Virus record (IMG/VR): IMGVR_UViG_3300017917_001342
Coordinates: 434,001-498,000 of that record
Length of the DNA stretch: 64,000 nucleotides
Strand: one strand, 5' to 3'
The notes beneath the pieces are model-generated. The model worked only from the letters and a program-made list of their open reading frames with translations. It was not told the origin of the DNA and made no database searches. A program made the position numbers and the translations under genes. This document shows, in pieces, positions 33,443 to 56,941 of the stretch (its first letter is position 1; each line of letters starts with the position of its first letter).

Positions 33443-34033
33443 TTAATTGTCGGTTTTATACCAAAACCAGCATTCGTTAGGTGCTTGCTTTAAAAGGGAA
33501 AGATCCCAACCTTTGCTTTTGTACCAACTTGAAACTGCAAAATTCACACTGAACAAATTGCTGTCATGCCCTGCAATAATGCCGCCAGTTCGTACCTTTG
33601 GATACCAACTGTCAAGGTCGGACAACACCTGCTTCATGCTGTGTCCACCATCTATAAACACAAAGTCGTATACATCGTCATCTAACATACTAGCAGCAGT
33701 TTGACTATCTTCTTTTATCAACTTAAAGCGATCGCCCATCAACGGTATGTTTTTCAACAACACACGGTAGTTCAACTCTTGTTCAAGTTTGGTAATTGGT
33801 CTATCCCAATCAATGTATGGTTGGTAATGGTCAACACCTATCAGAGAACTGATATTCGGACATTCCTGCAACATATACCAACTGTTTATACCTCGATTGA
33901 CACCTATTTCTATGCCAATTGCTGGATAAGGTAATTTCTTAAGTTCTTTCACAATGCCACGAGCAGCCTGCTGTTTGTATATCGCAGGCCAATCGGCACT
34001 TTCTAATAATGAGTTAATAGATTTGTCGTTCAC
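33443..34033 (-). CDS. Class I SAM methyltransferase (Methyltransf_24-like)
   Basis: IEIGVNRG, DFVFIDGGH, GGIIAGHD. Confidence 0.8.
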   Translation of the reverse strand: MNDKSINSLLESADWPAIYKQQAARGIVKELKKLPYPAIGIEIGVNRGINSWYMLQECPNISSLIGVDHYQPYIDWDRPITKLEQELNYRVLLKNIPLMGDRFKLIKEDSQTAASMLDDDVYDFVFIDGGHSMKQVLSDLDSWYPKVRTGGIIAGHDSNLFSVNFAVSSWYKSKGWDLSLLKQAPNECWFWYKTDN

Positions 34034-34037
34034 ATAG

Positions 34038-34045
34038 TATTTATA
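34038..34045 (-). promoter_or_regulatory. T4 late promoter consensus TATAAATA, 4 nt before the GTG start
   Basis: Exact match overlapping the upstream stop codon. Confidence 0.6.
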
Positions 34046-34577
34046 TTGGTTTTTGCCATAACCAACTGGTAACTATGCCATAACCTTGATTTGGTACAGA
34101 CGGATCAACTTCCCTATGATCGGGTATCAATTCACAACAGGCCTGTTTGACGCCTTCATGTTGCGGATGATTGTAGTCATGTCCGCCCATCCATCCTCCG
34201 GGTTTTACTTTTGGCAACCACGCAGTGATGTCTTGTACAACAGCTTCGTACGAATGATCACCATCTATCCATACAAAGTCTAAACTGTGATCTTCGTATT
34301 CAGTTGCAGCTTCTGTGCTAGGAATCTGTTTGTGAGTATAGCGTCCACAGACTTGAATCAAATTGTTGTTAAATTCAGTTTGATAGCCTACGTCAACACA
34401 GTCTAACTTGATGTTCTTGCCGCTATTAATAATCTCTACAAGCATGTATGCTGCACTTCTGCCCATGTAAGAACCGACCTCTACAAAATGTGCAGAGTCT
34501 GATACCTGTGCAATCATATCGTCGTAGATACCGGGATAGTCAAACCATCCTTCGATTTTGTTATAAAAGTGTTCCAT
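34041..34577 (-). CDS. Class I SAM methyltransferase (Methyltransf_24-like)
   Basis: VEVGSYMGRS, DFVWIDGDHSY, PGGWMGGHDY. Confidence 0.85.
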   Translation of the reverse strand: MEHFYNKIEGWFDYPGIYDDMIAQVSDSAHFVEVGSYMGRSAAYMLVEIINSGKNIKLDCVDVGYQTEFNNNLIQVCGRYTHKQIPSTEAATEYEDHSLDFVWIDGDHSYEAVVQDITAWLPKVKPGGWMGGHDYNHPQHEGVKQACCELIPDHREVDPSVPNQGYGIVTSWLWQKPI

Positions 34578-34601: not shown

Positions 34602-35195
34602 TTAACTGTGTTCTATCTTGCCATCGTCGCGACGTATTTTTCTCACTGTGGTGACAAAATCAGTATCAACAGGTTCCATTTCACTGAGAATACTGTTGCA
34701 TACATCGTTCAACCAACGAGAAATAATGTCATCTTCGGCACCAGTGTAGCCATTACTTTGTAGATATTCTACAAACGCAGGATTGTAATCTAACTCAAAA
34801 AATGTCTTGCTTGGATCAGTGGGATCCCAACTGATTTTTGGCATTGCCATATAGGGTTCGTTTAACAGATCAGCACGTTTACGATCATACTCTTGTTGTG
34901 CAATGCGACTATGCTTGAGATCAAGATCTAGCTTTGCAAGTTCTGTGGCATTTGGATTATCTGCATTATCAAGTTCTAACAGTTTCAATTCTGCTAGATA
35001 TTGATCAATACGACCGTATTGCAGATCAATTTTAATCACTGACCTTGTAAATTCTCTACTGTCTTCACCGTGCTCAATCTTTGCAAGTTCCACAGCAAGA
35101 TCGTAGCCACTGAGATTGTATTCTGCTTCGGCAATCAATCTTGATTTGCCTTTTAAGCCCCAACTTGCAGGCAAATATTTAAACGGTATTTTCAT
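34602..35195 (-). CDS. Hypothetical protein (197 aa)
   Basis: Clean ORF with FFELDYNPAFV...GYTG. Confidence 0.75.
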   Translation of the reverse strand: MKIPFKYLPASWGLKGKSRLIAEAEYNLSGYDLAVELAKIEHGEDSREFTRSVIKIDLQYGRIDQYLAELKLLELDNADNPNATELAKLDLDLKHSRIAQQEYDRKRADLLNEPYMAMPKISWDPTDPSKTFFELDYNPAFVEYLQSNGYTGAEDDIISRWLNDVCNSILSEMEPVDTDFVTTVRKIRRDDGKIEHS

Positions 35196-35206
35196 TATGA
35201 GTATCC

Positions 35207-36079
35207 TTATGCCAGACTAGCATACAAGTGTATTTGCAAGTTTAGAGTAAATCCATACTTGACACAATATTCTGCTGCATATTCATGGTTGCGTTGATTA
35301 GATTCTGCGTTAAGCAGGCCCGGGGTCCAGAATGAAACTACTTCGTCAATAGTGCTGCGCTCTTGCATAGTTGTCTGGTTAGAAGTTAGTCGCAGTTTCT
35401 TTGATGCAAGTGGTACTTCGTTATAGACATTCATTGGACTTACATAGATTTCTTTGCCTGTCTTGTTGCGCCACTCATGCGCCCAATCCGGTACCTCTGC
35501 ATATGGAGAACCTTCTGTAGCTTCCATAACAAATTTCAAACAGTCTGCACGTTCGAGTATTTCTGGACGCGGTTTCAAATACCGCACTGCAATCTTATTC
35601 TTTTCTAAACATTTTGGTGAACATACTAACACAGTGGACGCTGGTATAGCTGTATTCTGTGTACCGTTTGATTCAATCTGAGTTTTAGTAAAAATTCTGT
35701 CCATGTATTCTAAAAACGGACCAATGTTGTCTTGCAGCATTGGTTCCCCACCTGTCATAACAAGCACCATTTTTTTACGAGCAACGTCGCTATGATGTGT
35801 CCATGCAGGCCTATCTAGTTTTTTATCTGTGTAGAATTGCTCGATTGTCTGTTCTACACGTTCTGCGATCTGATCAAATGTTAGCCAATCACCGTCGTCG
35901 AAGAATGTATCACAGAATTGACAATCTAAGTTACATTTTGCAAGACGAATAAAGAACGCAGGTTCTCCACGAAAGGGTCCTTCACCTTGCAGTGTCATAA
36001 ACATACTAGTTACAAACAGTTGATCTTTGCTTGCGTCTTTAAAGTATTTTTTACCAATGATTTCGTTTGTACCAAACAT
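35207..36079 (-). CDS. queE: 7-carboxy-7-deazaguanine synthase (radical SAM)
   Basis: FMTLQGEG, FIRLAKCNLDCQFCDT, TGGEPMLQ, IESNGT, CSPK, LQIH. Confidence 0.9.
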   Translation of the reverse strand: MFGTNEIIGKKYFKDASKDQLFVTSMFMTLQGEGPFRGEPAFFIRLAKCNLDCQFCDTFFDDGDWLTFDQIAERVEQTIEQFYTDKKLDRPAWTHHSDVARKKMVLVMTGGEPMLQDNIGPFLEYMDRIFTKTQIESNGTQNTAIPASTVLVCSPKCLEKNKIAVRYLKPRPEILERADCLKFVMEATEGSPYAEVPDWAHEWRNKTGKEIYVSPMNVYNEVPLASKKLRLTSNQTTMQERSTIDEVVSFWTPGLLNAESNQRNHEYAAEYCVKYGFTLNLQIHLYASLA

Positions 36080-37085: not shown

Positions 37086-37381
37086 CCGTTCCTCAGATGA
37101 TGCTGCATTATGATACTGGAAACTTCTTGTCCCAGATCTTTATCTTCGCTGATAATGTAAAGTTCTGATTCATATCTATCACGTTTTGAATCATACCAAC
37201 TAACCTGTGCAACAGTACCACCGTTTGCAGTGTGAAATTTAAAATTTGCACTGCTTCTGGTACTGAGGTCATCATCAACAGCAGATGCCTTAACAATGCC
37301 AGATGATCTGCTGTTAGTAAGACGCTGATTGTCCCAGTCTTCGCGTATCCATTTAATCACTAGTTTTTTTAGAAAATTCAT
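37082..37381 (-). CDS. Hypothetical protein (99 aa)
   Basis: ATGA overlap with the folE stop. Confidence 0.7.
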   Translation of the reverse strand: MNFLKKLVIKWIREDWDNQRLTNSRSSGIVKASAVDDDLSTRSSANFKFHTANGGTVAQVSWYDSKRDRYESELYIISEDKDLGQEVSSIIMQHHLRNG

Positions 37382-38073
37382 CTAGGTGCAAACTCCTGTT
37401 GCAATTTGATATTATCAAAGAATTCTTTCTTAGTACCGGTGTCGTGATTAAATGCACCTTTCAACACTGTGGTTTGTGTTAGGCTGCTGTGTGCCATAAT
37501 ACCACGATTTTCGCAACAGCCATGTGTTGCCTGAATATACACACCTACGTCTTTACTGCCGGTGGCTTTCATAATCTCCCTGGCTATATCGTTACAGAGT
37601 TCTTCTTGTAGTGTACCACGTCGAGCACACCACTGTGCAATACGAGTATATTTGCTAAGTCCAATTAGTTTTTGTGCAGCAATAATACCGATATATGCAA
37701 CACCAGTTACTGGTTGATGATGATGGCTGCAAACGCTTTTGATTTCACTGCGTACTACCAACATACCTTCGTAACGGTCTTCGCTGTCGTTGGGAAATGC
37801 AGTTGGATTGGGAGACTTATCATAACGTCCTGACATCAGTTCGTTATAATACATCTTAGCAAGCCTGCGTGCTGTGCCTTTGCTGTTTGGATCTGTTTCT
37901 TTGTCGATTAACAGAGTATCTAACACTGCTTCAAATGCCAGTTCGGCTTCGTCAATCAGTTTCTTTTTTATGTCTTCTGTAATGAATTGAGAAATGTTAT
38001 CACCTGCCCAGTATCTTGTACCAGATGATTTGAGTTGTTCGCGAATTTTCGCGCTAACGGGATAGTTTGTCAA
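37378..38073 (-). CDS. folE: GTP cyclohydrolase I
   Basis: SVCSHHHQP, IGLSKYTR, LQEEL, HGCCENRG, TTVLKGAF. Confidence 0.95.
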   Translation of the reverse strand: MTNYPVSAKIREQLKSSGTRYWAGDNISQFITEDIKKKLIDEAELAFEAVLDTLLIDKETDPNSKGTARRLAKMYYNELMSGRYDKSPNPTAFPNDSEDRYEGMLVVRSEIKSVCSHHHQPVTGVAYIGIIAAQKLIGLSKYTRIAQWCARRGTLQEELCNDIAREIMKATGSKDVGVYIQATHGCCENRGIMAHSSLTQTTVLKGAFNHDTGTKKEFFDNIKLQQEFAPR

Positions 38074-38130: not shown

Positions 38131-38159
38131 ATTATAGTCTAAAATAGTAGTCAATGCAA
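38131..38159 (-). promoter_or_regulatory. Sigma70-type promoter for folE
   Basis: TTGCAT-17-TATAAT. Confidence 0.7.
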
Positions 38160-38165
38160 CATTGA

Positions 38166-38600
38166 CTACACTCTTAATTTTGCGCTGGCAGACGACACAC
38201 TGATCATGCCATTATACGAGCCTGTGCCACCGTTGGTAATACTGCTAGATGCACCAACTGCACCCATTGCACCAATTGATGCTAAGTTATAGTGTCTGTC
38301 ATGCCACAGTGTTTGTTGTTGATGTTCTTCAGTCTTTAGTTTAGCTTCTACTGGATCACAGCCAGTATCTAGCATAAATGTAACGATTCTGCGCATTCTG
38401 TTAAGTCGTTGGTATAGTTCTTCACTAGACTCTTGTAGATCACTCATTAAATGATTAAATCGTTCTTCTTCGTCTTTTATTCGTGTTTTAATATTTGCAA
38501 ATTGTTCAGCAGCTTGACGGTATTCTTCAAAATACTGTTCTCTAGCAGCAACTCGTTCTTCGTTGGTCATATAGGTTGGTCCTTTCCATATTCTTGCCAT
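38166..38600 (-). CDS. Hypothetical coiled-coil protein (144 aa)
   Basis: Helical N-terminal half, G/S-rich tail. Confidence 0.6.
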   Translation of the reverse strand: MARIWKGPTYMTNEERVAAREQYFEEYRQAAEQFANIKTRIKDEEERFNHLMSDLQESSEELYQRLNRMRRIVTFMLDTGCDPVEAKLKTEEHQQQTLWHDRHYNLASIGAMGAVGASSSITNGGTGSYNGMISVSSASAKLRV

Positions 38601-39109
38601 GATGTAAATGTATCACGTGTCATCAATTCGTGTAGACTATGACACCAAACACCTGGGTTAGATGCTTTGAAATCAGTGTCATCTATTTTCAACATTGTGT
38701 TGTAGTTGAACTGTTTGATATAGGGTATTTTGACACTGATCTGTGGAATGAAATTATCATACTCGCACCATCCAGATTCTAACACTGTGTTGCAATGCGT
38801 TACATCAAAATCCAATGTTACTAGATAATCCAGCTTCAACAATGGTTTGATCATACTATCCCATTTTTGCATAGCATCGTACAAATCCACGTTGTATTTT
38901 GACATTGTTGCAGCAGGATCAAAACACTGATTTGCACCAACAAATATGTGCTTACAATCATGCTTGTTTGCATAATCTACAATAGCAATTGGACTTTGAA
39001 TATCTACCACAAACAGTGTGCGTTGACCATATGCCGGTGTGCGTTCTATTTCTGTACCAACAAAAAATACCACATTGTTTTTTACGCCGTCTGCATAATC
39101 TCGTTCCAT
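38567..39109 (-). CDS. Uncharacterised protein directly downstream of dpdA (180 aa)
   Basis: FFVGTEIERTPAYGQRTLFVV...KIDDTDFKASNPGVWC; its start overlaps the dpdA stop (TAATG). Confidence 0.75.
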   Translation of the reverse strand: MERDYADGVKNNVVFFVGTEIERTPAYGQRTLFVVDIQSPIAIVDYANKHDCKHIFVGANQCFDPAATMSKYNVDLYDAMQKWDSMIKPLLKLDYLVTLDFDVTHCNTVLESGWCEYDNFIPQISVKIPYIKQFNYNTMLKIDDTDFKASNPGVWCHSLHELMTRDTFTSWQEYGKDQPI

Positions 39110-40767
39110 TACATATCCTCTATGTCCATACTGACATCGTTGTTGGCATCCATGCCTGTGATCTGCTGTAGCATTTTTGCATGTTTATTGATCAAATCCA
39201 TTGGACGCTCGCTAGTGAATATTTCCGGACAGAGATCTCTAAACTCTAATAGGTCTGGTGTTAGATGATGCCTAGCTTCTTCGATTGCCATGTCTTGATA
39301 TTTGTTTGCAGTTTGAATTGCATCAATGTGTACTTCCACATTGTGATTCATTGCCAACAGATAACTGAACCCATCCATGCTGCTTGGCCACTTGAGCTGA
39401 TACTTGTTGCGGTCATTGTTATAGTCTACATTACCCATATCAAACAAGCCACCATTTTCGTGACTGTGCAACAGATACTCTTTGTATTCTTTAGTCCAAC
39501 GGAACTTGTCACCTGCACGACCTTCGGGTGTTTTACTCCATTCGCCGTTTTCAATTTCTTTCTTTGTAAACTGTACTTTCTTGTATTCGAGATCATCATA
39601 GCCGCGAACACAGATATCACCAACTGTACAAGCATCGCCGATACGCGAACGATAGGGATAGCAACTTTTAATACGGTTTTCAATTAACCAGTCATTTAGA
39701 CTCTGCATACCGCCCTTGAGTTCTTTTTTATCAACAATTGGTCCACCTTTGAATCCTACACTGGTTGGACTTAGTTCGTATCCATAGTACATCTGACCTT
39801 TAGCTGTCATAACAAAAGGTGATGCAGCATCAAAGCTTACAGTAAGTTCCGGATCTACATATTTTCTCAATGCACGCTGTACAGTGGTTAATGCACAGCC
39901 TGCTTTGATCTTACCGTTACCAAGATAATGCAGCCATTCACGACCTTGTAGATAACCATCGTCGCGCATGATAATCAGTCGACGTAGATTGATGCTAAAG
40001 TTACTGGCCTGTACGTTTGAGAATGCCCAGCTTTCAAATGGCAAGTCTTTGGTTGCTTCCCACCATATATCGCCTTCTTCTTGGTTACGACCTTGAAGAA
40101 CGTTTAGGAATTTAGTAGCACCTTCTTTGCGATTCTTAATAAAGAACTCGTGATTTTCTAAACTACCACGTAGGCAGTCGCCGAAGTTTTTCAAACTTGG
40201 ATGTAGACTTGCACCAGTTACTGGATCAAGACCAAACTTAACCAGTGCATAGGTAGGCCAGTCTAGTACCATACTGTAGTCACTAGTTGCTTCTAACCAG
40301 CGCAGCAGTTTCATACGAACATCATCTTTATCATTTAGATGCTGTTCGGGTGTTTGATTTGGCTTAGGATGCCATGGGTATTTTAGCACACCTGTTGCAG
40401 CTTGGAAACCACCACTGTCACCAATCATCACAGTGCGACTTCTGTCACGCTGTTGAACTAGGCTTTCTTGTTCCCAACTCTGTTCTGGATCAAGTATTGC
40501 ATGTCCTGCCGAATACAGTGCAACAGGATAATAAAACATGCTGTTTGCAGGATCTAGAAAATCTAGATCCTTGAGTCCGTTGACCATACCTGGTGGCAAC
40601 GATTCTCTCATGTTGTAGTTTTTCATGCTGGCAATTCTAGCATAGATAGCACTGATACTAGGCAAGAAACATGCATAGTCTTTTTGCGGATCAGCAAGAT
40701 TTTTAGCAGCGGGATTTAGGTTTAATCCGTCTGTTGTGAATTGAAATCGTTTAAATGTGTTTGTCAT
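39109..40767 (-). CDS. dpdA: TGT-fold guanine transglycosylase, probable DNA 7-deazaguanine insertase (DpdA-like)
   Basis: GDSGGFQ TGT motif, VLDWP, LNVLQG, HYLG, SFDAASP; no CxCxxC zinc site seen; flanked by folE and queE. Confidence 0.72.
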   Translation of the reverse strand: MTNTFKRFQFTTDGLNLNPAAKNLADPQKDYACFLPSISAIYARIASMKNYNMRESLPPGMVNGLKDLDFLDPANSMFYYPVALYSAGHAILDPEQSWEQESLVQQRDRSRTVMIGDSGGFQAATGVLKYPWHPKPNQTPEQHLNDKDDVRMKLLRWLEATSDYSMVLDWPTYALVKFGLDPVTGASLHPSLKNFGDCLRGSLENHEFFIKNRKEGATKFLNVLQGRNQEEGDIWWEATKDLPFESWAFSNVQASNFSINLRRLIIMRDDGYLQGREWLHYLGNGKIKAGCALTTVQRALRKYVDPELTVSFDAASPFVMTAKGQMYYGYELSPTSVGFKGGPIVDKKELKGGMQSLNDWLIENRIKSCYPYRSRIGDACTVGDICVRGYDDLEYKKVQFTKKEIENGEWSKTPEGRAGDKFRWTKEYKEYLLHSHENGGLFDMGNVDYNNDRNKYQLKWPSSMDGFSYLLAMNHNVEVHIDAIQTANKYQDMAIEEARHHLTPDLLEFRDLCPEIFTSERPMDLINKHAKMLQQITGMDANNDVSMDIEDM

Positions 40768-40797: not shown

Positions 40798-41898
40798 TCA
40801 AGCTGATTTTACTAAACTGTTTACCAATGGCGTCGCATCAGTAAACTGTGATATTTTGTTAACTTGTTCTGCAATATCCTGTTGCAATTGGTTGTCTCGA
40901 TTTAGTACAGCGTTTACGTCTGCTTTTATACGAGCAATTAGATTATCTTTATTTTTGAGGTAATTGTCAAAATTAATTGTCCATTCGCTAGGATACTTAA
41001 AACGATCATTCCACATTTCTTTATAGCTTAGCCTATCTGGTACCATTGGCACAGCACCTGCAAGCAGACCTTCGATAACACTAATGCCATAGGTCTCTTG
41101 CAAATTAGCACTGAACACTATTGCAGCAGATCCCAGTATCTCATGATATTGATCCTTTGTTAGGGTACGTTCTTGACACACTATCCATTCATACTCGGGC
41201 ATTGACTCTGCAAGGTCTTTGAAAATCACTAGTTGCTTTTCTGGTGCTAGTCTGTGTGGGAATACAATCTGTGGCTTCTTAACTGGTTGTGCATACGCAG
41301 GCATAATATCATGTAGATATTCCATTGGCCAGCCTGTTAGCTGTACGCGGCCTTGAGAATTCTCATGCCATTTGTTCCATTCTTCGATACTGCCGTTGTC
41401 ATCAAACAGTGTATTCAAAAACAGTTCGGCATGAAAATCAGTTGCAAACCAATTTACATCATAGGTGTAGAACATTGTGCCTTCTGCATTGCGAACCCAG
41501 GGTTTGTTGCCAATCAGCCTACCTAAGAAGTCTTGCGGGTCATAGCTGCCAGCATGCCACATGCCATGTATTTCAATATTTTTCCCAAGTAATTCAGCCA
41601 TGTAGCGTAGCTGAATTACAGTTGGGTTCCATGCATCTGTATACAAAAATTTGTCACCATCTTGTATTTTGCCGTCTCTGAATAGCTGTGCAATTACACT
41701 TAGTTGCGAACCTTTATAGATGTTTGTTGCACCAAAATCTAGAAATGCACCCGGTGTTGGTTGTGCCGGTACATCTTCACCTTCTATGACTGCAACGGTT
41801 TCTGCACCTGCTGCGTCTAGCAGTTTGGGAATATGATCATACCATTGTCTGGTATAGCGAGTGTCAATTGGTTCAATTGGTACTACGTATATAGTCAT
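40798..41898 (-). CDS. GT-B fold (GT4-like) glycosyltransferase
   Basis: FPHRLAPEK, SANLQETYGISVIEGLLAGAVPMVPDRLSY (ExFG...E-type signature). Confidence 0.8.
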   Translation of the reverse strand: MTIYVVPIEPIDTRYTRQWYDHIPKLLDAAGAETVAVIEGEDVPAQPTPGAFLDFGATNIYKGSQLSVIAQLFRDGKIQDGDKFLYTDAWNPTVIQLRYMAELLGKNIEIHGMWHAGSYDPQDFLGRLIGNKPWVRNAEGTMFYTYDVNWFATDFHAELFLNTLFDDNGSIEEWNKWHENSQGRVQLTGWPMEYLHDIMPAYAQPVKKPQIVFPHRLAPEKQLVIFKDLAESMPEYEWIVCQERTLTKDQYHEILGSAAIVFSANLQETYGISVIEGLLAGAVPMVPDRLSYKEMWNDRFKYPSEWTINFDNYLKNKDNLIARIKADVNAVLNRDNQLQQDIAEQVNKISQFTDATPLVNSLVKSA

Positions 41899-41899
41899 G

Positions 41900-42352
41900 T
41901 TACATTCCCCACATGTTGTCTTCGTATCGACGTATCACACGTTCGATTATATCTTGTGCATCTTTATTGGCTTTGGTAGTGTGAATAGCATTCTTCAACG
42001 ACCGTATCATATGCTTGCGCATAATTTCTTGATTTTCTATGTATCGATCCATAGATATTTTACCAATGTCATTGCTGTTAGAATGCCATTCATTGTAAAC
42101 GCGAACTAATTCATCAAAGTTGCGTTTGCTTTCTTCGTCCCACATGCTAACTGGCTCATAGGGATCGTCACAACCATTGATATAGTTGCACAATCCGCTA
42201 TCCATTAGATTAACAATACTTTCTAAGTCTTGAATACGTTTTTGTTGATCGACGATAGTGTCAATGGCTTCTTTGATCAAAAGATGTACTTTACTATCAG
42301 CCATATGCGATTCTAATCGGTTTACCAAATTAGCAAGTGTGGCGTCATTCAT
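41900..42352 (-). CDS. Hypothetical protein (150 aa)
   Basis: Start overlaps the upstream stop (TAATG). Confidence 0.65.
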   Translation of the reverse strand: MNDATLANLVNRLESHMADSKVHLLIKEAIDTIVDQQKRIQDLESIVNLMDSGLCNYINGCDDPYEPVSMWDEESKRNFDELVRVYNEWHSNSNDIGKISMDRYIENQEIMRKHMIRSLKNAIHTTKANKDAQDIIERVIRRYEDNMWGM

Positions 42353-42759
42353 TATGCTAGTCCTTTAATGTGTTCAGCACGGTCCCACTTGATTAGTGCG
42401 CCGTTTTCATTGTCTTCGCTAACTTCGATCCACACACTGCGATTTGGATAACGAGCAGAAATTTCTGCATACAAATCATCTGCAATCATCTCGCAGCTTT
42501 TGTAATCTAGATTGAGTATGTTGTCGCCATAGAGATTTTGCAGCCAACGTTTGAACTGAATAAATTCAATGTCCCTGTCGTCGTGTGTTACACTGATCCA
42601 AACTTGAAAGTGAAAAATGTGACGATGCGGATGCCCTAGAAAACTAACATCATATTTGTCACCAGTTGCAAGTTTTGGATCAGTTAATGCCGCAGGATAT
42701 CTGTGAATACCTTCCTGGGTAAACTTTACCCAGATCATTTTGCTTGTAGCATCAACCAT
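42352..42759 (-). CDS. dpdL: QueD-like T-fold protein with LxxxHRHxF motif (DpdL-like CDG decarboxylase candidate)
   Basis: LGHPHRHIF replaces the QueD CxxxHGH motif; SCEMIADDL...EVSEDNENG C-terminus; AGGAG RBS. Confidence 0.6.
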   Translation of the reverse strand: MVDATSKMIWVKFTQEGIHRYPAALTDPKLATGDKYDVSFLGHPHRHIFHFQVWISVTHDDRDIEFIQFKRWLQNLYGDNILNLDYKSCEMIADDLYAEISARYPNRSVWIEVSEDNENGALIKWDRAEHIKGLA

Positions 42760-42818: not shown

Positions 42819-45800
42819 TCAAAGATCGATAGTAGTTCTAACGGTTTTAATAACCATAGTACCACTATTAGCAGGAGTGAATATTAATTCCACAACTCCG
42901 CCTACAATGTCTGCATCAAACTCGCCTAAGCTGCCACTGGTATAGATGTAGTTGTATTCGGTAATGTACACATCAGTACCGTCATGTATTAACATAACCT
43001 GTCCGGATTGATAAGTGCTATTGGTTTGATCTGTAATCTGTATAAAGTAGTGAGCAGTTCTGTATTCTGTTGCAGGCCATGAGTCTACTACCTGTTGGAA
43101 CGTGCTAGAACTAGTATATGAATTACCATCTAGTACCCAGGTGTTACCGCTTACAGTAGAATTGCTGTTGAGTTTTTCTACAGTAACAGTACCTCTAGAA
43201 GTCAATGCACTGACGTTAGCATGACCGGCAACAGCAATGTTACCGCCCGCATTAACATCACCGCCAAGACCTATGCCACCACCTACTACCAATGCACCTG
43301 TGGCAGTGTTTGTGCTTGCATTAGTTGAGTTAACTGTTACATTCTGTCCAAACTGACCATAGACGTTGCTTACCAATGCATTTACTGTTGCAGTACCACT
43401 ACTCTGTAGTGATGTAACTGTAAATGCAGTGCCGCTAATAGCACCATTTGATATCAAACTGCCTACTGAGAGACTGCTGTTAAAATTGGATGCACCGGTA
43501 ACACCAACACCGCCGCGTACATCCAAGTTACTGTTTGGTGTTGTAGTGTTTATACCAATACTGCCAGTGAATGCAGTATAACCACTCAGGCCACCGGTTA
43601 TATCTAGATAAGCACCTGTATCGTTATTGATACTGCCTCTAAAACTAGCAACGTTGCTTACATATAATCCAGTACCCGGTCCGTCTGCTAAGATTGCACC
43701 GCCCATAACTTCAAGTTGTGTAGCTGGATTATTAGTGCCGATACCAACACGACCTGCGAAATAGTTTACACTACCACCAGTGACAATGTTGCCACCTATA
43801 CCAATACCGCCGCCTACAACCAACGCACCGGTAGTTGTACTGATACTAGGATTGGTACTGTTAACAGTTACGTTTTGACCAAACAAACCATAGACGTTTG
43901 AAATCAATACGTCTGTTAAGGTTGTGGTGCTGCTTTGTATAGATGTAAATCCGGCATGTGTACCCGTAACTGTGCCGTTACTAGCTAGAGAACTTACACT
44001 GGCTCTACCAACTGATTGTATGTTAGTTGCTACAACATTGGTATTACTTGATAAACTGTTAACAGATGTGTGACCGATGACTTTTAATTCGTTGACAGTC
44101 AGTCTTGTTGCATTGTTGTCCCAGAATAAGTTGTCACCGTTACCTGAGAAGCTGTTTGCTGCGCCCGCAAATTGCACTGTACCTGGAATACCATAACTCA
44201 GTGTGCTGGTAGCAGATGTAGTTTGGAAACTGCCGTCTGGGAATATTATGCCGCTGGCTGTATTGGAATTACCTATATGTATATTTCCGTATACGTCCAA
44301 TGGATAATTGTAAGTTGCAGTGCCTATACCGATTGCAACATTGGCAATAATGTAAGTACCAGCAGTAATACTGGTGTTGCTAACCAACACATTGAACTGC
44401 GAACTACCGCCAACAGTTATATTGTTAGCAGTAAATCCTATATTTGCAACAACATAATTTGCTTGTAACGTGCCACTTGATTGAATATCACCGTTGCTTA
44501 CTAATCGTTGACCGGTGATAGTACCGTTTGCTTGTATAAATGTATTACTGCGTAGAGAATCACCTACGATTTTATCGTTGGCCTGTATGGCAATATTAGA
44601 ATAGAGATTCTGTGCAACAATCTGGCCGGTGGATTGTATAAAACTGTTACTGTAAATTTCGCCAGCCCACAGTGTACCATTGGCCTGTATTGTAGTATTA
44701 CTTGTTAGTTTGTTACCTAATACGTAACTATCAGCCTGAACAAAGTTATTACTATAATATCCATTGGCATATACAAAAGATGCTGCTCGTACAGTGGAAT
44801 TACTTGAAAATGTGTCAACAATTACAATACCAGTAGCATTCAAACTACCAGTTTTCATGTCAACGTTGCTGTAAATGCTGTCCCCTAAAATTACAGTAGC
44901 AGCTTGAATTGTAGAATTGCTAAAAATTCTATTTGCAGTTATATCACTGCGAGCAGAAATGCTGTCTGCATTCACATAGGTATTGGAGTCTAAATATCCA
45001 GTCTGTGTACCTAAATGTGTATAGGTATAATTTGATACAGTTTGAGAAAAATTACCTTGTGTTGCATTTAACACAGATGCTTGTACAAAGGAATTGCTGA
45101 TAATAGCATTGGCTATTATTCTGTCAGATGCATTAACTACTGGTGAAAATACTGAAATGTTACCAACTAGAACATTACCAGTAATATAGTTTAATGCTGT
45201 AATATTGTTACTAGTAACCGAATCATTTGCTGCCAACAACAATCCAGTTATTGTGTTTGTAGCAGACATGTTGGTAGCACTGATTGCAGTGTTACTCTGT
45301 ATATTATTACCTGTGATAGTACCTGCGGCGCTGACAAAACTGTTGCTTCTTATACCGTTTGATTGTATGTCGTTTACAGCTCGTATACCGTCTAGCGAAG
45401 AAATTTGACCGCCGGTGTTCAGAGAATCTCCGATACCAACACCACCTGCAACAATTAATGCACCTGTGGTAGTATTAGTACTTACAGTAGTATTGCTGAG
45501 ATATTGACTACCAAAGTGAGCTCTACCATAGACATATCCGGCTATCGCTTCAAATGGGTTATATACATTACTAGAATTTGGTTGCACATTGGTGATGTAA
45601 ATGAGATCACCTGTGCTGTTTTGCCAACCTAAGAATGCATTATTATCATCAATGACATAATAATTCATTATCATGCCACGATCATAACCATCGTTAACAG
45701 TTAATGGGTCATTGTTAATCGATTCGTTACCAACTATGATAGTTGGACCTAGTATAGAAACTACGTTACTGTTGATAATAGAACTGTTACCAGTGACGAT

Positions 45801-47597
45801 TAAGTTACCGGCAACACGCAGGTTACCAGCTATAAATGCAGCACCTCCTACGTTAAGGTTGCCGCCAATTCCCACACCGCCTGTAACAGTCAATGCACCG
45901 CTTGCTGTACCATAGCTCTGTGCAGTGTTTGTAACGTTAACGATACCGGATACATTTAAATCTGCTGTGACAACTGTGGTATTTGCAGTTATGATATTTG
46001 CACTTATTTGATTAAATGCATTGATGTTTTCAGAAGTTACGTTGAGATTTGCGTATATTTGATCGGCTATTACATCAGCAGATTGAATGGTAGTATTACT
46101 GACAATTTGTTGCGATACTATACCGGTAATTACGTTTACAGTGTTTGCAGTTATCTCAGTGTTGGTAATTACAGAATTTAACTGTGCAACACCGACAGAT
46201 TTTATAGTAGATGCTTCTACAAATCCATTACTGCGAATATCGTTGCCTATTATTAAATCTGCGGCGGTCATAGTAGACAAACTGTCAACTGCCCCGCCTA
46301 GTATTCTACCGGCAGCATAGATCACAGTATTACTTGATAGAGAATCTACATTTGCGTGAAAATGTACGGTTATTCTCTGAGTTGTGGTACTACCAGTTAC
46401 TTCTAATGTGTTAAGCGTAGTGTCACTCAACACCTGTAGATTATTTGACGTAATGGTATTATTAGTGTTTAAACTGTCTACACTAGTTAAACCAGTTGAT
46501 TGTAGATTGGTAGCAACTACATTGGTATTGCTATTCAAACTTTGAACAGTGGTAGTTCCACTATTTTGCAGCGATGTAAATGTGCCAGCAGTACCGTTTA
46601 TAGTAGTACCAACAATTGCGCCGTTGCTATTCAATGAATTTACAGTAGCAACTCCGGCGGTATTAAAATCACCGCTATACAGCGTGTTAGTAAATGTGCC
46701 GTTGACTGCGTCTACATAGGTATTGCTTGTAAATGCGTTGACAACTGCATTACCACTTACCTGCAGATTGGTAAATGTACCAGTGTTAAAATTGATTACA
46801 TTGCCACTAATAGTGGTATTGCTTACAAGTGCGTTTACTGTTGCTGTTCCGCTGCTTTGTAAACTGTTAAATGTACCATCAGTGCCATTTATACTTGTGC
46901 CATTGATTGCACCATTACTCGCAAGCGCATTTACTGTTGCAGTACCAGAAACATTTAACTGGCCAGCGTAGGCATCACTGGCAAATATACCAGTTAAACC
47001 GCTAACCGCAGTGTTGCTTGCTAACGAGTTGACAGTAGCAACACCCGCAGTGTTGAGCTCAGCACTATAGATTGCAGTATTTGATACAAAATTGTTAACG
47101 GTTGCAGTGTTTGAAACAGTTAAGTCGTTGCCGATGATATTAAGTGCAGCAGCATAACCATTTACAATTAGATTCGCACCGTTGTCTAACACAAGGTTAT
47201 TGCTGGTGTAATCCCAAAATAAGTGCGACGAATCGCCGGCAAATGCGTTGCCAACACCGGCAAACTGTATAGTACCTTGAATACCAAAGCTTGGTGTATT
47301 TTTAGTAGCAGTGCTTTGAAATGTTCCGTCTGGAAATATTATACCGCTTGAAGTTGCAGTATTGCTGATATGCACATTACCCCAAACATCTAATGGATAG
47401 ACGATTTGAGATGTGCCTATGCCAATAGCTGTAAAATTACCTTGGTTTATTATTACGTTGCCTGGTAATCCGGATGCAGTTAGCAGTTGAAGGTCGCCGC
47501 CAGAATTGACTAAGCGAGGTCCGCCTTTGCCAAAGCTCAGGTCTCCAGAAACGCCACTCTGTCTAAAATCAAAAGTTGGGTTAGTTGGTAAAGTCAT
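42819..47597 (-). CDS. Long tail fibre-like protein (1592 aa)
   Basis: N/S/T/G-rich, repeated TVNxLxSN and GALxVxGGxGIG motifs, internal duplication, globular C-terminal domain; late promoter upstream. Confidence 0.75.
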   Translation of the reverse strand: MTLPTNPTFDFRQSGVSGDLSFGKGGPRLVNSGGDLQLLTASGLPGNVIINQGNFTAIGIGTSQIVYPLDVWGNVHISNTATSSGIIFPDGTFQSTATKNTPSFGIQGTIQFAGVGNAFAGDSSHLFWDYTSNNLVLDNGANLIVNGYAAALNIIGNDLTVSNTATVNNFVSNTAIYSAELNTAGVATVNSLASNTAVSGLTGIFASDAYAGQLNVSGTATVNALASNGAINGTSINGTDGTFNSLQSSGTATVNALVSNTTISGNVINFNTGTFTNLQVSGNAVVNAFTSNTYVDAVNGTFTNTLYSGDFNTAGVATVNSLNSNGAIVGTTINGTAGTFTSLQNSGTTTVQSLNSNTNVVATNLQSTGLTSVDSLNTNNTITSNNLQVLSDTTLNTLEVTGSTTTQRITVHFHANVDSLSSNTVIYAAGRILGGAVDSLSTMTAADLIIGNDIRSNGFVEASTIKSVGVAQLNSVITNTEITANTVNVITGIVSQQIVSNTTIQSADVIADQIYANLNVTSENINAFNQISANIITANTTVVTADLNVSGIVNVTNTAQSYGTASGALTVTGGVGIGGNLNVGGAAFIAGNLRVAGNLIVTGNSSIINSNVVSILGPTIIVGNESINNDPLTVNDGYDRGMIMNYYVIDDNNAFLGWQNSTGDLIYITNVQPNSSNVYNPFEAIAGYVYGRAHFGSQYLSNTTVSTNTTTGALIVAGGVGIGDSLNTGGQISSLDGIRAVNDIQSNGIRSNSFVSAAGTITGNNIQSNTAISATNMSATNTITGLLLAANDSVTSNNITALNYITGNVLVGNISVFSPVVNASDRIIANAIISNSFVQASVLNATQGNFSQTVSNYTYTHLGTQTGYLDSNTYVNADSISARSDITANRIFSNSTIQAATVILGDSIYSNVDMKTGSLNATGIVIVDTFSSNSTVRAASFVYANGYYSNNFVQADSYVLGNKLTSNTTIQANGTLWAGEIYSNSFIQSTGQIVAQNLYSNIAIQANDKIVGDSLRSNTFIQANGTITGQRLVSNGDIQSSGTLQANYVVANIGFTANNITVGGSSQFNVLVSNTSITAGTYIIANVAIGIGTATYNYPLDVYGNIHIGNSNTASGIIFPDGSFQTTSATSTLSYGIPGTVQFAGAANSFSGNGDNLFWDNNATRLTVNELKVIGHTSVNSLSSNTNVVATNIQSVGRASVSSLASNGTVTGTHAGFTSIQSSTTTLTDVLISNVYGLFGQNVTVNSTNPSISTTTGALVVGGGIGIGGNIVTGGSVNYFAGRVGIGTNNPATQLEVMGGAILADGPGTGLYVSNVASFRGSINNDTGAYLDITGGLSGYTAFTGSIGINTTTPNSNLDVRGGVGVTGASNFNSSLSVGSLISNGAISGTAFTVTSLQSSGTATVNALVSNVYGQFGQNVTVNSTNASTNTATGALVVGGGIGLGGDVNAGGNIAVAGHANVSALTSRGTVTVEKLNSNSTVSGNTWVLDGNSYTSSSTFQQVVDSWPATEYRTAHYFIQITDQTNSTYQSGQVMLIHDGTDVYITEYNYIYTSGSLGEFDADIVGGVVELIFTPANSGTMVIKTVRTTIDL

Positions 47598-47666: not shown

Positions 47667-49685
47667 TCAATTGTAATCTAATACGATTTTAAATTCTCCA
47701 GAGGTACTAGACCCTGGATTTATAAATGCTTTGACACTGGTTGTAGATAATACTGGATATGACAATGTTGTTGTGTATAGACCCACTGTTGTTGGATCAA
47801 TTAATGCACCGTCCATTAATAAACCATGCACAGTGTCAGTGCCAATTTCAATGTTGCTGCTGTTGTCGTTGAATGCCTGTATGATTTCGATGTTTAATCT
47901 AGTCAAAGTTTTAGTCGGCGCTAGTATACCAACTGTAACAGGACTAGTACTGAGATAACTGCCGGTTGCAGTAAAACTATTCACTAGTGTTGTATCACCA
48001 GATGTAGTGTTGCCAACGTTTTGACCATTCTGACTTAGCCCTAGTTGCATCCATACAGTCGGACCGGTATCAACTGCTACATATGCTTGGTTGTGACCAG
48101 CACCGTCGTTATAAACAAACGCAATAGCACCTCGTGTGGGTGTTAGTGCATTTCTAGCTGCAATATCTTGTACAAAGTATCCAAACGCAACACCAGTTGG
48201 ACCTGTTGGACCTGTTAATTGGCTTAGACTTGATATTGACCATGCGATAAGGTCAACCTGATCACCTGCAACAGACGGTGCATTTAATGTAACAGTTATA
48301 CCATCATCTGCTGTGTACTCAGTTGGCGGTAATTTGAGTCCATTTACATACACATCTATATATGGTGCTGTATATAGAGCATTGAATATAGTCTGGCCGC
48401 TTGTAGCGGTGTAGTTATATTCTTGGTATGCACCAACTGCGGCCGGACCAGTTGGACCTGTTACATCGCTGGCAGCACCAGTTGGACCTATAAAACCCTG
48501 TGGACCAGTAGGACCAGTTACTACGCTGTCTGCGCCAGTCGGGCCAATAGGACCAGTAGGACCGCCTAACGGACCAGTGGGACCTGTAGCACCTACTCCT
48601 GTTGCTCCCGTAGCACCAGTTGGTCCAGTAGGACCTGCTGCACCACCTACGCCTAGACGTTGCCAATTTGCATTACCAAGTGTAGGGTTAATACAAATGT
48701 ATGCAGTGTTTGTGCCGATGTCTATCCAAAGACTACCGTAACTGTAACCAAATGCTTCATCATCGTAGATAGTAGGCGGTACTACACTGGTAAAATTGTT
48801 TAGAGGTCCTGATAAACTGCCTTGTGATAATTTTACTGCGCTGGTATTGTTTATTTTTATAAACAATGGCATAGCAAAATTATTTGGTTTAACTGCGGTT
48901 AGTTTTCCCGGTACAGTGGTACTTAGATATAGGACATCACCTGGATTACCAGGCAGTGTAGGTAAATCATAAAGTACTTTGCCTTTTGGTTCCCAGCTAA
49001 AGTAATCATATCCAGGAATGCCTAATTGTCTTACAGTACCAATTACATTAACAGTTGAAATGTCATCAGCAATTGCCAGCGCATAGGTGCCATCAGATTT
49101 AAGATAGATCTGATCGCCTATATCAAATCCATTGCTGGGTTGTAAAACAGTTAACAGATTCTGTTTAATGTTTCTAGCATTGAATTTGCTAATAACATCT
49201 TCTAAAAATCCCGGATAGGGTTGAAGAAAACTGTTGTATAAGGTTAGTGTATGGAATACTGGAATGCCATCTTCGTCTAACGCAAAAATAAAACCAGGCT
49301 CACCTGTTGCTGCAACACCGTCTGGAGCAGAAAACTGCTCATATCTTCCGGTATCTTCTATTGTACAAACCAGTGTTGTGCTGTTAGTTAATAGTGGGTC
49401 TATTGCAATGATCTGGCAGCATTTACCAGTGGATGCTTCCGCATACCACATGCCTACTTTGATATCTAATGCATTATAAACATAGAGTTGTTCGGTACTG
49501 AAACTGCTGTGGTTTTGTTGAGTTACAGCAGCAGTCATAATAAAACGATATGGTTGCGGTGCTGGCCCGCCAGCCCACCATTGATCTTCTCCGTATATAG
49601 GACCTTCGTCTACAGGCCAATACCCATCAGGTACAATACTGATATTGTCTACATATAACGTAATGATAGGAAGTATAGATGCCAT
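47667..49685 (-). CDS. Collagen-like tail fibre/virion appendage protein (672 aa)
   Basis: Central (Gly-Pro-Thr)n tract, followed by the YTATSGQT...VYVNG fibre module. Confidence 0.75.
48438..48653 (-). repeat. Gly-X-Thr collagen-like coding repeat
   Basis: [13 protein letters not shown]... interrupted triplet repeat. Confidence 0.9.
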
Positions 49686-53660: not shown

Positions 53661-54175
53661 TAGCGTCCCTTTGTCAAAATAGCTTTAAGCCTAGCGTTCT
53701 TAGCGGCTTTTTTCTTTGCTAGCATAAGCTTAACTGGTCCTACACGATCGTCAATCAGTATTCCTTGCAAATGGTCAAATTCGTGCAAGAATATTCTTGC
53801 CCACCATTCATCAAAGTCAGTTACCTGTTGATTACCGTGTTCATCTCGATACATGGCTTTGATACGTTTGCTACGTGGTATATCTAACACAAGCCCTGGT
53901 ATGCTCAAACAGCCTTCTGGTTGTACAGACATTTCGTCGCTGGCTTCTATTACCACAGGATTAATAAAAACGTAGTCTTGTCCTTCGAGACTGATTACAA
54001 ACAAACTGAGATCACTACCAACCTGCGGTGCAGCTAAACCAACTCCGCCATGTTTTTTAAGTGTATCAAACATGTCGCGAATCAGTGTTTGATGATTGAC
54101 AATATCTTCCGGTTCAATGACAGTGGTCTTTTGCCTAAGTATGGCATTTGGTTTTTTAACGATATCTAATATCAT
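53660..54175 (-). CDS. def: Peptide deformylase
   Basis: GVGLAAPQ, EGCLS, HEFDH. Confidence 0.95.
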   Translation of the reverse strand: MILDIVKKPNAILRQKTTVIEPEDIVNHQTLIRDMFDTLKKHGGVGLAAPQVGSDLSLFVISLEGQDYVFINPVVIEASDEMSVQPEGCLSIPGLVLDIPRSKRIKAMYRDEHGNQQVTDFDEWWARIFLHEFDHLQGILIDDRVGPVKLMLAKKKAAKNARLKAILTKGR

Positions 54176-56622: not shown

Positions 56623-56941
56623 TCCTGACGAATTTAAAGGCGGATGGTTTATAGGAGATTTTGAACCTAGTATTTGGCGTACAACTGGTTTTGAAATAGG
56701 TTATAAACATCATATTGCAGGCGAAGCATGGCCTGCACACTACCATGAACACATGGACGAAGTTACTTTTCTTCTAGAAGGTACAATGCAAATTTGCAAT
56801 CAGACCATAACTGGTCCTATTATATTTTTAATAGGCCGTAATGAAATCGCTGACCCCGAATTTATAACAGACTGCAAGGTATTCATAATAAAAACTCCGT
56901 CTGTACCCGGAGATAAAGTTTTAATTGGAGATAAAACATGA
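56609..56941 (+). CDS. Cupin-fold protein (possible sugar epimerase/isomerase)
   Basis: GGWFIGDFEP, HYHEHMDEVTFLLEG cupin metal motif. Confidence 0.75.
   Translation: MKLFDPDEFKGGWFIGDFEPSIWRTTGFEIGYKHHIAGEAWPAHYHEHMDEVTFLLEGTMQICNQTITGPIIFLIGRNEIADPEFITDCKVFIIKTPSVPGDKVLIGDKT

Follow-up and report, generated by a model that had tools for sequence, protein, structure and literature searches.

Which role does a predicted glycosyltransferase (GT) play within a phage operon that is predicted to exchange guanine for 7-deazaguanine in DNA? This question is raised by an ORF in a 64,000-nt stretch (the window; positions 434,001 to 498,000 of the IMG/VR record IMGVR_UViG_3300017917_001342) of a 518-kb phage genome. 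A sequence-only reading had noticed at this place a GT-B glycosyltransferase with a GT4-like signature, located between dpdL-like and dpdA genes and away from other GT clusters, and had suggested that it glycosylates the 7-substituent of the deazaguanine in DNA. The observation was confirmed by the analysis presented here, while its interpretation is only partly supported, in that the operon placement and the main idea are supported but the detail of the 7-substituent is not.

Sequence, predicted fold and donor site

The ORF lies exactly at 40798-41898 on the minus strand, starts with ATG and encodes 366 aa (P0001). Taken alone, the protein shows only a weak GT4-like signature. Searches against Pfam, PHROGs, NCBIfam and PADLOC gave no significant hit, and single-sequence and profile searches against PDB sequences were negative as well. 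PF00534 matches only at E 0.044 with 13.7 bits over residues 249-299, below the cut-off of 26.4 bits. Within the family the signature is clearer, as 16 of 19 diverse homologues hit PF00534 (best 9.1e-11), 11 hit PF13692 and 5 hit PF13439. The AlphaFold (AF2) model has a mean pLDDT of 90.3 and a pTM of 0.88 and shows a full GT-B fold, i.e., two Rossmann-like domains with an inter-domain cleft. Foldseek returned 443 PDB hits at E<=0.001, led by GT-B enzymes, and VIA-align gave Z scores of 23.6-20 over about 300-320 residues (290-325) to sucrose-phosphate synthase (SPS), BshA, MshA, PimA/PimB', GlgM and OtsA, placing the model closest to retaining GT4/GT20 enzymes.

R216 and K221 are conserved in all 19 homologues down to 20% identity, and E268 and E276, which form an E-x7-E motif, in at least 90%. 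These residues correspond to the donor site, i.e., the Arg/Lys pair for the diphosphate and the E-x7-E motif, although their equivalence to the MshA/PimA residues is read from the motif spacing and not from a superposition. D88, D123 and E139 are also conserved. It might be argued that the protein is a catalytically inert GT-B scaffold that assists DpdA or DpdL, for example by binding the base or DNA, as the sequence has diverged so far that Pfam barely recognizes it and as the N-terminal glycine-rich loop typical for GT4 enzymes is replaced by an EP..RYT.QW motif. This is very unlikely in view of the conservation of the diphosphate- and sugar-binding residues across the whole family and of the co-occurrence of sugar-nucleotide and de-N-acetylase genes. 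A complex prediction of the GT with DpdL gave a score of 0.00, which is not evidence either way.

Organization of the deazaguanine operon

All genes of the operon are encoded on the minus strand, with spacings of 1 nt and 30 nt or 1-nt overlaps from DpdL through the gene of a 180-aa protein. Upstream of the GT lies DpdL (42352-42759; 135 aa), a QueD-like T-fold protein that is the proposed 7-carboxy-7-deazaguanine decarboxylase. It carries the motif LGHPHRHIF, which fits the published LxxxHRHxF signature replacing the CxxxHGH of QueD (Cui et al. 2023, PMC10516641), hits phrog_17812 at 1.2e-30, and is 32% identical to DpdL of phiST and 54% to the ACP17 protein. Homologues occur in 28 phage records, including phiST. 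DpdL and the GT are separated by a lineage-specific 150-aa ORF (41900-42352), which overlaps DpdL by 1 nt and ends 1 nt before the GT start, gave no family hit and is not conserved in other loci.

Directly downstream of the GT lies a candidate DpdA-like DNA guanine transglycosylase (39109-40767; 552 aa, P0122). It has the motifs GDSGGFQ (D117) and SFDAASP (D313), and the DSGGFQ and FD(A/C)ASP motifs are invariant in the alignment. The hhalign comparison to ACP17 gp123 gave E 4e-5 at 70% probability, and language-model look-alikes include a viral TGT-like cluster (0.94) and a PF23859 DpdA cluster (0.89). However, no Pfam TGT match was found anywhere in the genome, a PDB profile search gave no hit, and hhalign to the phiST candidate DpdA3 reached a probability of only 7%. 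The assignment, which rests on motifs and weak profile or feature matches, is therefore probable rather than proven.

The candidate DpdA is followed by a conserved 180-aa protein (38567-39109), which is present in 50 of 56 related loci between DpdA and DpdL. Its AF2 model has a pLDDT of 91, but Foldseek, a wide VIA search and an Atlas comparison gave no convincing match, the best being Z 6 and including partial-barrel matches to QueE. A lineage-specific 144-aa ORF with only weak hits (38166-38600) is the last gene before a hairpin with a 10-bp stem (38147-38169), which overlaps the 3' end of this ORF (stop at 38166-38168) upstream of FolE and is terminator-like on both strands. A promoter scan was uninformative, giving fewer sites than in shuffled sequence. 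FolE, GTP cyclohydrolase I (37378-38073), was identified by PF01227 at 3e-39 and phrog_2197 at 9.7e-45, and the radical SAM enzyme QueE, 7-carboxy-7-deazaguanine synthase (35207-36079), by TIGR04322 at 1.1e-20, other QueE models and PF04055. Downstream of QueE a 197-aa protein (34602-35195) travels with the module in most loci, its homologues forming the cluster found in 53 of the 88 loci clustered. Two Methyltransf_24 paralogues of 178 and 196 aa (33443-34577; PF13578 at about 3.6e-18 each) are possibly tailoring enzymes and have homologues only in the closest relatives (loci L011 and L090).

QueD lies elsewhere in the genome, at genome positions 294682-295095. For QueC only a partial match of 19.8 bits, below the cut-off, was found, and QueC is also missing in the five GT-bearing isolates tested. 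A phosphoribosyltransferase (PRTase) homologue on the minus strand at 61982-62455 shows 39% identity at E 2.5e-35 in tblastn to the PRTase that sits inside the module in many other contigs, where PF00156 was confirmed on representatives. The other GTs of the window are GT2/TPR genes at about 59.3-61.4 kb, so that the location of P0001 away from other GT clusters holds.

Linkage to deazaguanine genes in isolates and metagenomic contigs

The sequence-only reading had named a distribution of the GT unlinked to dpdA as an observation that would refute it, and the distribution was found to be tightly linked to the deazaguanine genes, above all to DpdL, so that this test failed to refute the reading. 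All seven isolate lineages carrying a homologue (20-46% identity) also have FolE and a QueE-type gene, and in six the GT lies within about 3 kb of DpdL, despite rearranged gene orders. The order is DpdL-GT-x-FolE...QueE in Phosso, DpdA-GT-DpdL...PRT-QueE in PA5oct, in which the GT is gp167, QueD-FolE-x-DpdA-GT-DpdL-QueE in ACP17 and QueE-PRT-QueD-FolE-GT2-DpdA-DpdL-GT in BUCT-ZZ01, and the linkage was also found in BCSR5 and in X1 and BUDD. In the PhiXhv-12 lineage the GT homologue sits about 110 kb from FolE and the QueE-like gene, and no DpdL was found.

In IMG/VR, DpdL lies close upstream in 56/56 contigs of the clade of the window, in 11/11 loci of the BCSR5 clade that include upstream DNA and in 72/73 contigs of the BUCT-ZZ01 clade; in the window clade DpdA is present in 56/56. 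Most metagenomic loci within each clade share ancestry, so these large counts are not independent events. A megablast search of the 20-kb surroundings against the phage collection found no match, a search for related loci with the GT of PhiXhv-12 found nothing, and with the GT of ACP17 only ACP17 itself was found. The family is 95-100% viral and abundant, with at least 593 and at least 600 confirmed IMG/VR stretches in two clades and about 8,000 proteins in a word search.

Sugar genes often travel with the GT. PMM, CTP_transf_like or an epimerase is found in 40/56 loci of the window clade, a PIG-L de-N-acetylase in the BCSR5 clade and, together with GlmS, in PhiXhv-12, and a second GT in BUCT-ZZ01.

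One alternative is that the GT acts on an unrelated target, such as another DNA base, a virion protein or a host envelope sugar, and is found next to the deazaguanine genes only because both belong to the same early DNA-metabolism gene block. In most loci the module indeed lies within replication gene blocks (DNA polymerase, clamp, exonuclease), large phages carry many GTs and sugar genes for other purposes, with at least five further GT matches in this genome, and the PhiXhv-12 homologue is not next to the deazaguanine genes. However, adjacency to DpdL survives at least seven different gene orders and divergence down to 20-26% identity. A hydroxymethyl-pyrimidine as acceptor was rejected, as the only gene of the Thymidylat_synt family is a full-length canonical ThyA (345 bits), without a second paralogue that could serve as hydroxymethylase. 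This alternative is regarded as unlikely.

Proposed pathway and acceptor

The explanation favored here, which is held to be about as likely as not, is that P0001 is an active, nucleotide-sugar-dependent GT-B glycosyltransferase and a dedicated part of the QueC-less, DpdL-type 7-deazaguanine DNA-modification module. In this model, FolE, QueD and QueE make 7-carboxy-7-deazaguanine (CDG), DpdL converts CDG to 7-deazaguanine, the DpdA-like enzyme exchanges it for guanine in phage DNA, and the GT adds a sugar from a host or phage-made NDP-sugar, either on the DNA after insertion, as T4 glucosylates 5hmC, or on the free base just before insertion. The resulting glycosylated deazaguanine in virion DNA would be a cap protecting against nucleases and against the 7-deazaguanine-specific defense glycosylases now known in bacteria (bioRxiv 10.1101/2025.10.29.685425). 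What the analysis has shown are the predicted fold, the conserved donor-site residues, the operon structure and the deep linkage to DpdL, DpdA and sugar genes that withstands rearrangement, while catalytic activity with sugar transfer from an NDP-sugar, deazaguanine as the acceptor, the arrival of the product in DNA and the atom that carries the sugar are inferred, without chemical evidence of any kind.

DpdL clusters without the GT exist, such as in phiST, the DNA of which carries plain dDG by mass spectrometry (PMC10516641), and in this view the GT would be an add-on layer downstream of DpdL. VP1 DNA also carries plain dDG. PA5oct DNA carries a modified G of unknown identity (PMC12191111), and glycosylation of a 7-deazapurine base by a GT using UDP-GlcNAc is known in huimycin biosynthesis (bioRxiv 10.64898/2026.04.15.718813).

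The site proposed by the sequence-only reading, the 7-substituent, is not supported. Following Cui et al. 2023 (PMC10516641), the base predicted from FolE, QueD, QueE and DpdL without QueC is 7-deazaguanine, which has only H at C7, or its precursor CDG, which has a carboxyl there. The acceptor atom must therefore be something else, i.e., N2, C7/C8 or the CDG carboxyl. As 7-deazaguanine offers no hydroxyl, an N-, C- or acyl-glycosidic link would be needed, which is unusual for a GT4-like enzyme and speaks against the model.

A second alternative, considered doubtful, is that the GT glycosylates a soluble small molecule of the pathway and that the sugar never reaches DNA. Candidate acceptors are free 7-deazaguanine or CDG, a deazapurine nucleotide made by the co-occurring PRTase, or a pterin by-product, and the purpose could be a huimycin-like glycoside, the sequestration or activation of an intermediate, or a pterin glycoside. 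In favor of this, the closest structures (BshA, MshA, SPS, OtsA and LmbT) are all small-molecule GT4/GT20 enzymes, HuiG glycosylates a free deazapurine base, and tetrahydrobiopterin glucosyltransferases (5zer, 9v0l) appear among the Foldseek hits, although these rank no better than dozens of other GT-B enzymes. A PRTase travels with the module in 33/56 and 39/73 loci as well as in PA5oct and BUCT-ZZ01, and the pairs of GT and PIG-L deacetylase mirror BshA/BshB and MshA/MshB. The acceptor domain is rich in conserved aromatic and acidic residues and acidic, with a pI of 4.6 for the N-terminal domain and 4.9 for the protein, which is weak evidence because the DpdA-like family is acidic too. However, the GT tracks DpdL and DpdA, the DNA-directed end of the pathway, rather than FolE or QueD in general, and a lytic phage has no evident use for a soluble glycoside. 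If the glycosylated base is then inserted by DpdA, this alternative merges with the favored model.

All published sugar modifications of DNA bases sit on pyrimidines, namely glucosyl- and arabinosyl-5hmC, base J and glycosylated 5-hydroxycytosine, while the eight or so known deazaguanine DNA modifications carry small groups only. In agreement with the sequence-only reading, no report of a glycosylated deazaguanine in DNA was found in the literature searched. It is possible, although this remains tentative, that virion DNA of this phage and of the many phages carrying the DpdL-GT pair (PA5oct, ACP17, Phosso, BCSR5, T4-like cyanophages such as BUCT-ZZ01, and over a thousand IMG/VR contigs) contains a glycosylated 7-deazaguanine, which would be the first sugar-bearing purine in any genome. 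The bond would have to be an N2-glycoside, a C7/C8 C-glycoside or an acyl-glycoside, the sugar would differ between lineages and could be an amino sugar where a PIG-L deacetylase is present, and the modification would have evolved as a cap against defenses that recognize bare 7-deazaguanine. A dedicated GT family locked to the DpdL/DpdA genes would extend hypermodification by sugars to purines and could explain why the ACP17 genes failed to give dDG in E. coli in the experiment of Cui et al., what the modified G of the therapeutic jumbo phage PA5oct is, and how phages might escape the defense glycosylases. The enzymes could also become tools for labeling deazaguanine in DNA.

Comparison with known systems

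The T4 alpha- and beta-glucosyltransferases (AGT and BGT; GT72/GT63) and the newer phage GTs acting on 5hmC or 5-hydroxycytosine DNA (bioRxiv 10.1101/2023.12.21.572611; PMC13326640) are, as P0001 is predicted to be, phage-encoded GT-B enzymes placed beside the genes that create the non-canonical base and proposed to add a sugar as a second protective layer. These enzymes put the sugar on a hydroxyl of a modified pyrimidine, whereas the partner pathway of P0001 makes a 7-deazapurine with no hydroxyl. A special kinship to T4 AGT or BGT is not supported, as neither is among the 50 rows listed from the PDB or BFVD searches.

BshA/BshB and MshA/MshB, in which GT4 small-molecule GlcNAc transferases are paired with PIG-L/LmbE deacetylases, are among the best structural matches (Z 22-23.5) and have the same R...K and E-x7-E donor site. 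No sequence-level similarity was found, the N-terminal acceptor domain of P0001 has its own motifs, and its genomic context is DNA modification and not thiol biosynthesis.

HuiG of huimycin biosynthesis transfers GlcNAc onto a 7-deazapurine base made by FolE, QueD and QueE and shows that such a base can be glycosylated without a hydroxyl (bioRxiv 10.64898/2026.04.15.718813). HuiG is actinobacterial and makes a secondary metabolite, its acceptor is an O-methylated, QueC-dependent preQ0 derivative, and its cluster has no DNA-insertion enzyme. The eukaryotic queuosine glycosyltransferases of tRNA (QTMAN/QTGAL type, with QTMAN/GTDC1 a GT4-type enzyme) glycosylate a 7-deazaguanine derivative already sitting in a nucleic acid, with the sugar added to the cyclopentenediol of queuosine. 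A queuosine-type acceptor was rejected for P0001, as without QueC the pathway stops before preQ0 and neither preQ0 nor anything made from it can be produced by the phage.

The DpdL-type 7-deazaguanine DNA modification of Cellulophaga phage phiST and related phages (Cui et al. 2023, PMC10516641) matches in its gene set, i.e., FolE, QueD, QueE, DpdL with the LxxxHRHxF motif and a DpdA-family transglycosylase, which is here the probable one, without QueC. The DpdA candidate of the present phage is a longer, distinct subfamily, and phiST has no GT homologue, while in the locus described here a GT, a conserved 180-aa protein and, in related loci often, sugar-nucleotide genes are added.

Predicted fold and family of the glycosyltransferase

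The window covers bases 434001-498000 of a single virus record of 518,643 bp with direct terminal repeats that is rated as 100% complete. It represents a very large phage with a GC content of about 40%, and no close relative exists in the phage collection at the DNA level. An ORF occupies exactly positions 40798-41898 on the minus strand and encodes a protein of 366 aa. By sequence alone the protein is almost invisible. Nothing significant was found in Pfam, PHROGs, NCBIfam or PADLOC, or among PDB sequences, even with a 44-sequence profile, and the best Pfam match is Glycos_transf_1 with an E-value of 0.044 over residues 249-299. It is the family that shows what the protein is: of 19 homologues spanning 20-68% identity, 16 match PF00534 (best E-value 9e-11), 11 match PF13692 and 5 match the N-terminal PF13439. 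An AlphaFold2 model built on 44 homologues, with a mean pLDDT of 90.3 and a pTM of 0.88, is a complete GT-B fold. With this model, Foldseek finds 443 PDB chains at E<=0.001, and VIA-align gives Z-scores of 23.6-20 over about 300-320 residues to sucrose-phosphate synthase, BshA, MshA, PimA/PimB', GlgM, OtsA and LmbT, which are the retaining GT4/GT20/GT5 group. The GT4-like signature of the sequence-only reading is therefore confirmed.

Across the deepest alignment R216 and K221 are invariant, and E268 and E276, forming an E-x7-E motif, are nearly so. We read these as the diphosphate- and sugar-binding residues of GT4 enzymes, so that the donor site looks intact. The N-terminal acceptor domain is special to this family as it has an EP..RYT.QW motif where GT4 enzymes have a glycine-rich loop, a HAGSY motif and three invariant acidic residues, D88, D123 and E139.

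Organization of the deazaguanine operon

On the minus strand, DpdL (42352-42759) is followed by a 150-aa ORF, the glycosyltransferase (GT), a 552-aa protein, a 180-aa protein (38567-39109) and a 144-aa ORF. Next come a hairpin at 38147-38169, FolE, two small ORFs, QueE, a 197-aa protein, two Methyltransf_24 paralogues and a 5'-3' exonuclease. From DpdL to the 180-aa gene the genes are 1 nt apart, 30 nt apart, or overlap by 1 nt. DpdL carries the sequence LGHPHRHIF, which fits the LxxxHRHxF signature used to separate the proposed CDG decarboxylase from QueD (Cui et al., PMC10516641). The 552-aa protein has invariant GDSGGFQ and SFD(A/C)ASP motifs, it aligns by hhalign to ACP17 gp123 (E-value 4e-5), and its look-alikes in a protein language-model comparison include viral TGT-like and PF23859 DpdA clusters. 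As it has no Pfam or PDB hit, we call it DpdA-like with that caveat. QueD lies 140 kb away and no QueC was found in the genome. The locus is therefore the QueC-less, DpdL-type pathway, which, following Cui et al., should deliver 7-deazaguanine, or its precursor CDG, to DNA.

The 180-aa protein is a second component of the module for which no clear structural relative was found: its model is confident (pLDDT 91), but the best match reaches only a Z-score of 6, including partial-barrel matches to QueE. The adjacent Methyltransf_24 paralogues (33443-34033 and 34041-34577, minus strand) lie just downstream of QueE and the 197-aa gene. Their homologues occur only in the closest relatives, the loci L011 and L090, and they may be tailoring methyltransferases acting on the base or the sugar. 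Directly upstream of DpdL lies a very large ORF of 1592 aa (42819-47597, minus strand) without Pfam or PHROG hit, next to a tail-fibre-like gene (47667-49685), so that a structural gene block abuts the DNA-modification operon. A second very large ORF encodes 2964 aa (15-8909, plus strand). Elsewhere in the window three radical-SAM-related ORFs (19176-21922, plus strand, and 22405-23640, minus strand), i.e., a radical SAM protein, a SPASM-domain protein and a second radical SAM protein, lie next to a canonical thymidylate synthase (24607-25452). The phage also encodes a full-length DnaJ with J domain and C-terminal domain and a DUF2201 metallopeptidase/VWA protein (54172-55044 and 28103-29386, respectively, both minus strand).

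Linkage of the glycosyltransferase to DpdL across viral lineages

A tblastn search against 50,697 phage records found GT homologues in 23 records from seven lineages. In Phosso (45% identity), PA5oct and its kin (40%) and ACP17 (36%) the GT lies among FolE, QueD and QueE genes, and the same holds for BCSR5 (26%) and the T4-like cyanophage BUCT-ZZ01 (23%). In X1 and BUDD (24-25%), for which only DpdL was looked at, DpdL lies about 1.5 kb from the GT. A search with DpdL finds 28 records, of which 18 are the GT-bearing ones. DpdL is the immediate neighbour of the GT in Phosso, PA5oct, ACP17 and BUCT-ZZ01, and it lies within 1.5-3 kb in X1, BUDD and BCSR5. As the gene orders differ from lineage to lineage, the pairing has survived many rearrangements. 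None of five isolates tested has QueC. In the BCSR5 locus (L007, 5242-6799) an AAA_28 kinase-like protein lies between DpdL and the GT, and the clade has in this place a protein with a weak PAPS-reductase/PP-loop match. The latter could be a QueC-like ATP-dependent step, so that the base in that clade may not be plain 7-deazaguanine.

In IMG/VR the GT family is large, with at least 593 confirmed stretches for the clade of the window, at least 600 for the BUCT-ZZ01 clade and 12 for the BCSR5 clade. In the window clade 56 loci carry at least 6.5 kb of upstream DNA; DpdL and the DpdA-like gene are present in all 56, and the 180-aa protein is present in 50, where it always lies between DpdA and DpdL. 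DpdL lies near the GT in 11 of 11 BCSR5-clade loci that include upstream DNA and within 1 kb upstream in 72 of 73 BUCT-ZZ01-clade loci. Loci within a clade share ancestry and these are not independent counts; the agreement across clades at 20-26% identity is the real evidence. ESM Atlas clusters of the fold are 95-100% viral. The one exception to the pairing is the PhiXhv-12/Ep026 lineage, in which the homologue lacks the N-terminal motif, no DpdL was found, and the gene sits beside GlmS and a PIG-L-type deacetylase. Even so, that phage has FolE and a QueE-like radical SAM gene elsewhere in its genome.

Co-occurrence with genes of nucleotide-sugar metabolism

Genes of nucleotide-sugar metabolism travel with the module. 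In the window clade a phosphomannomutase (PF03332), a cytidylyltransferase-like nucleotidyltransferase (PF01467) and an NAD epimerase/dehydratase (PF01370) lie just upstream of the clamp and DpdA genes, and at least one of them is present in 40 of 56 loci. By our reading of their sequences, some loci also carry a UDP-glucose-dehydrogenase-like gene, an ADH-like gene, a Gfo/Idh/MocA-like gene and an SGNH gene. The BCSR5 clade has a conserved PIG-L/LmbE-type de-N-acetylase with the HxDD motif, BUCT-ZZ01 has a second GT and PA5oct has a short SDR-like protein. The variety of sugar genes between lineages resembles the diversification seen in other glyco-modifications under selection.

A phosphoribosyltransferase (PF00156) is common in several clades, being found in 33 of 56 window-clade and 39 of 73 BUCT-ZZ01-clade loci, and in PA5oct (gp163) and BUCT-ZZ01; its positions include L002:12330-12764, L009:3084-3545 and many IMG/VR loci. 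It could salvage the guanine released by DpdA or, alternatively, it could make a deazapurine nucleotide, as TubE and ToyH do in tubercidin and toyocamycin biosynthesis. In the genome of the window itself homologues of these sugar-metabolism and phosphoribosyltransferase genes exist but are scattered, the phosphoribosyltransferase lying at 61982-62455 on the minus strand. The window also encodes a RuBisCO large-subunit-like protein (56938-58161, plus strand; PF00016 with an E-value of 2.5e-39 and the N-terminal domain PF02788), which follows a sugar-phosphate nucleotidyltransferase (55900-56622) and precedes a DUF7796 protein and two GT2/TPR proteins (59314-61448). It may be a RuBisCO-like protein serving a sugar or salvage pathway rather than carbon fixation.

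Putative function and comparison with known systems

The gene belongs to a large, virus-only GT-B family that is a previously unremarked, conserved component of DpdL-type deazaguanine modules. While the predicted fold, the conserved residues and the genomic linkage rest on the present analyses, nothing chemical is shown, and sugar transfer, the nature of the acceptor and the presence of the product in DNA are inferred. The simplest reading is that the GT puts a sugar on 7-deazaguanine, either on DNA after DpdA has inserted the base, or on the free base, which the unusually long DpdA-like enzyme would then insert. We consider a glycosylated deazaguanine in virion DNA about as likely as not, a prediction that is directly testable on cultured phages. 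A selective reason exists, as many bacterial DNA glycosylases specifically destroy dDG-substituted phage DNA (bioRxiv 10.1101/2025.10.29.685425) and END nucleases sense the modified G of PA5oct (PMC12191111). It may also explain why ACP17 DpdL plus DpdA gave no dDG in E. coli (PMC10516641). In a literature search that was not exhaustive, no paper was found that reports a glycosylated deazaguanine in DNA or notes this GT.

A soluble acceptor, i.e., a base, nucleotide or pterin, is a live rival, as the closest structures all act on small molecules. Tetrahydrobiopterin glucosyltransferases are among the many Foldseek hits, but they are not distinguished from the others. The protein is acidic, although the DpdA-like family is acidic too, and a complex prediction of the GT with DpdL gave no answer. 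Which atom would carry the sugar remains a matter of inference. The sequence-only reading, which proposed glycosylation of the 7-substituent, is right in outline and wrong in this chemical detail, since with no QueC there is no 7-cyano or 7-aminomethyl group; it can only hold in the form of an ester on CDG or a C-glycoside at C7, and N2 is the documented alternative.

Among known systems, a special kinship to the T4 enzymes is not confirmed, as AGT and BGT do not appear among the 50 rows listed from the PDB or BFVD searches. Chemical precedent exists in HuiG, which transfers GlcNAc from UDP-GlcNAc to a 7-deazapurine base (bioRxiv 10.64898/2026.04.15.718813). DpdL clusters also exist without the GT. 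Rhizobium phage RHph_I1_18 and several Vibrio and Aeromonas phages are examples, and in RHph_I1_18 (locus L010, 8420-9244) a macro-domain (Appr-1-p processing) protein follows DpdL, which may be a different add-on to the same core pathway. A further GT-less cluster is that of phiST, the DNA of which is fully dDG by mass spectrometry (PMC10516641). In comparison with these clusters, the GT is therefore an added layer downstream of DpdL and not part of making the base.
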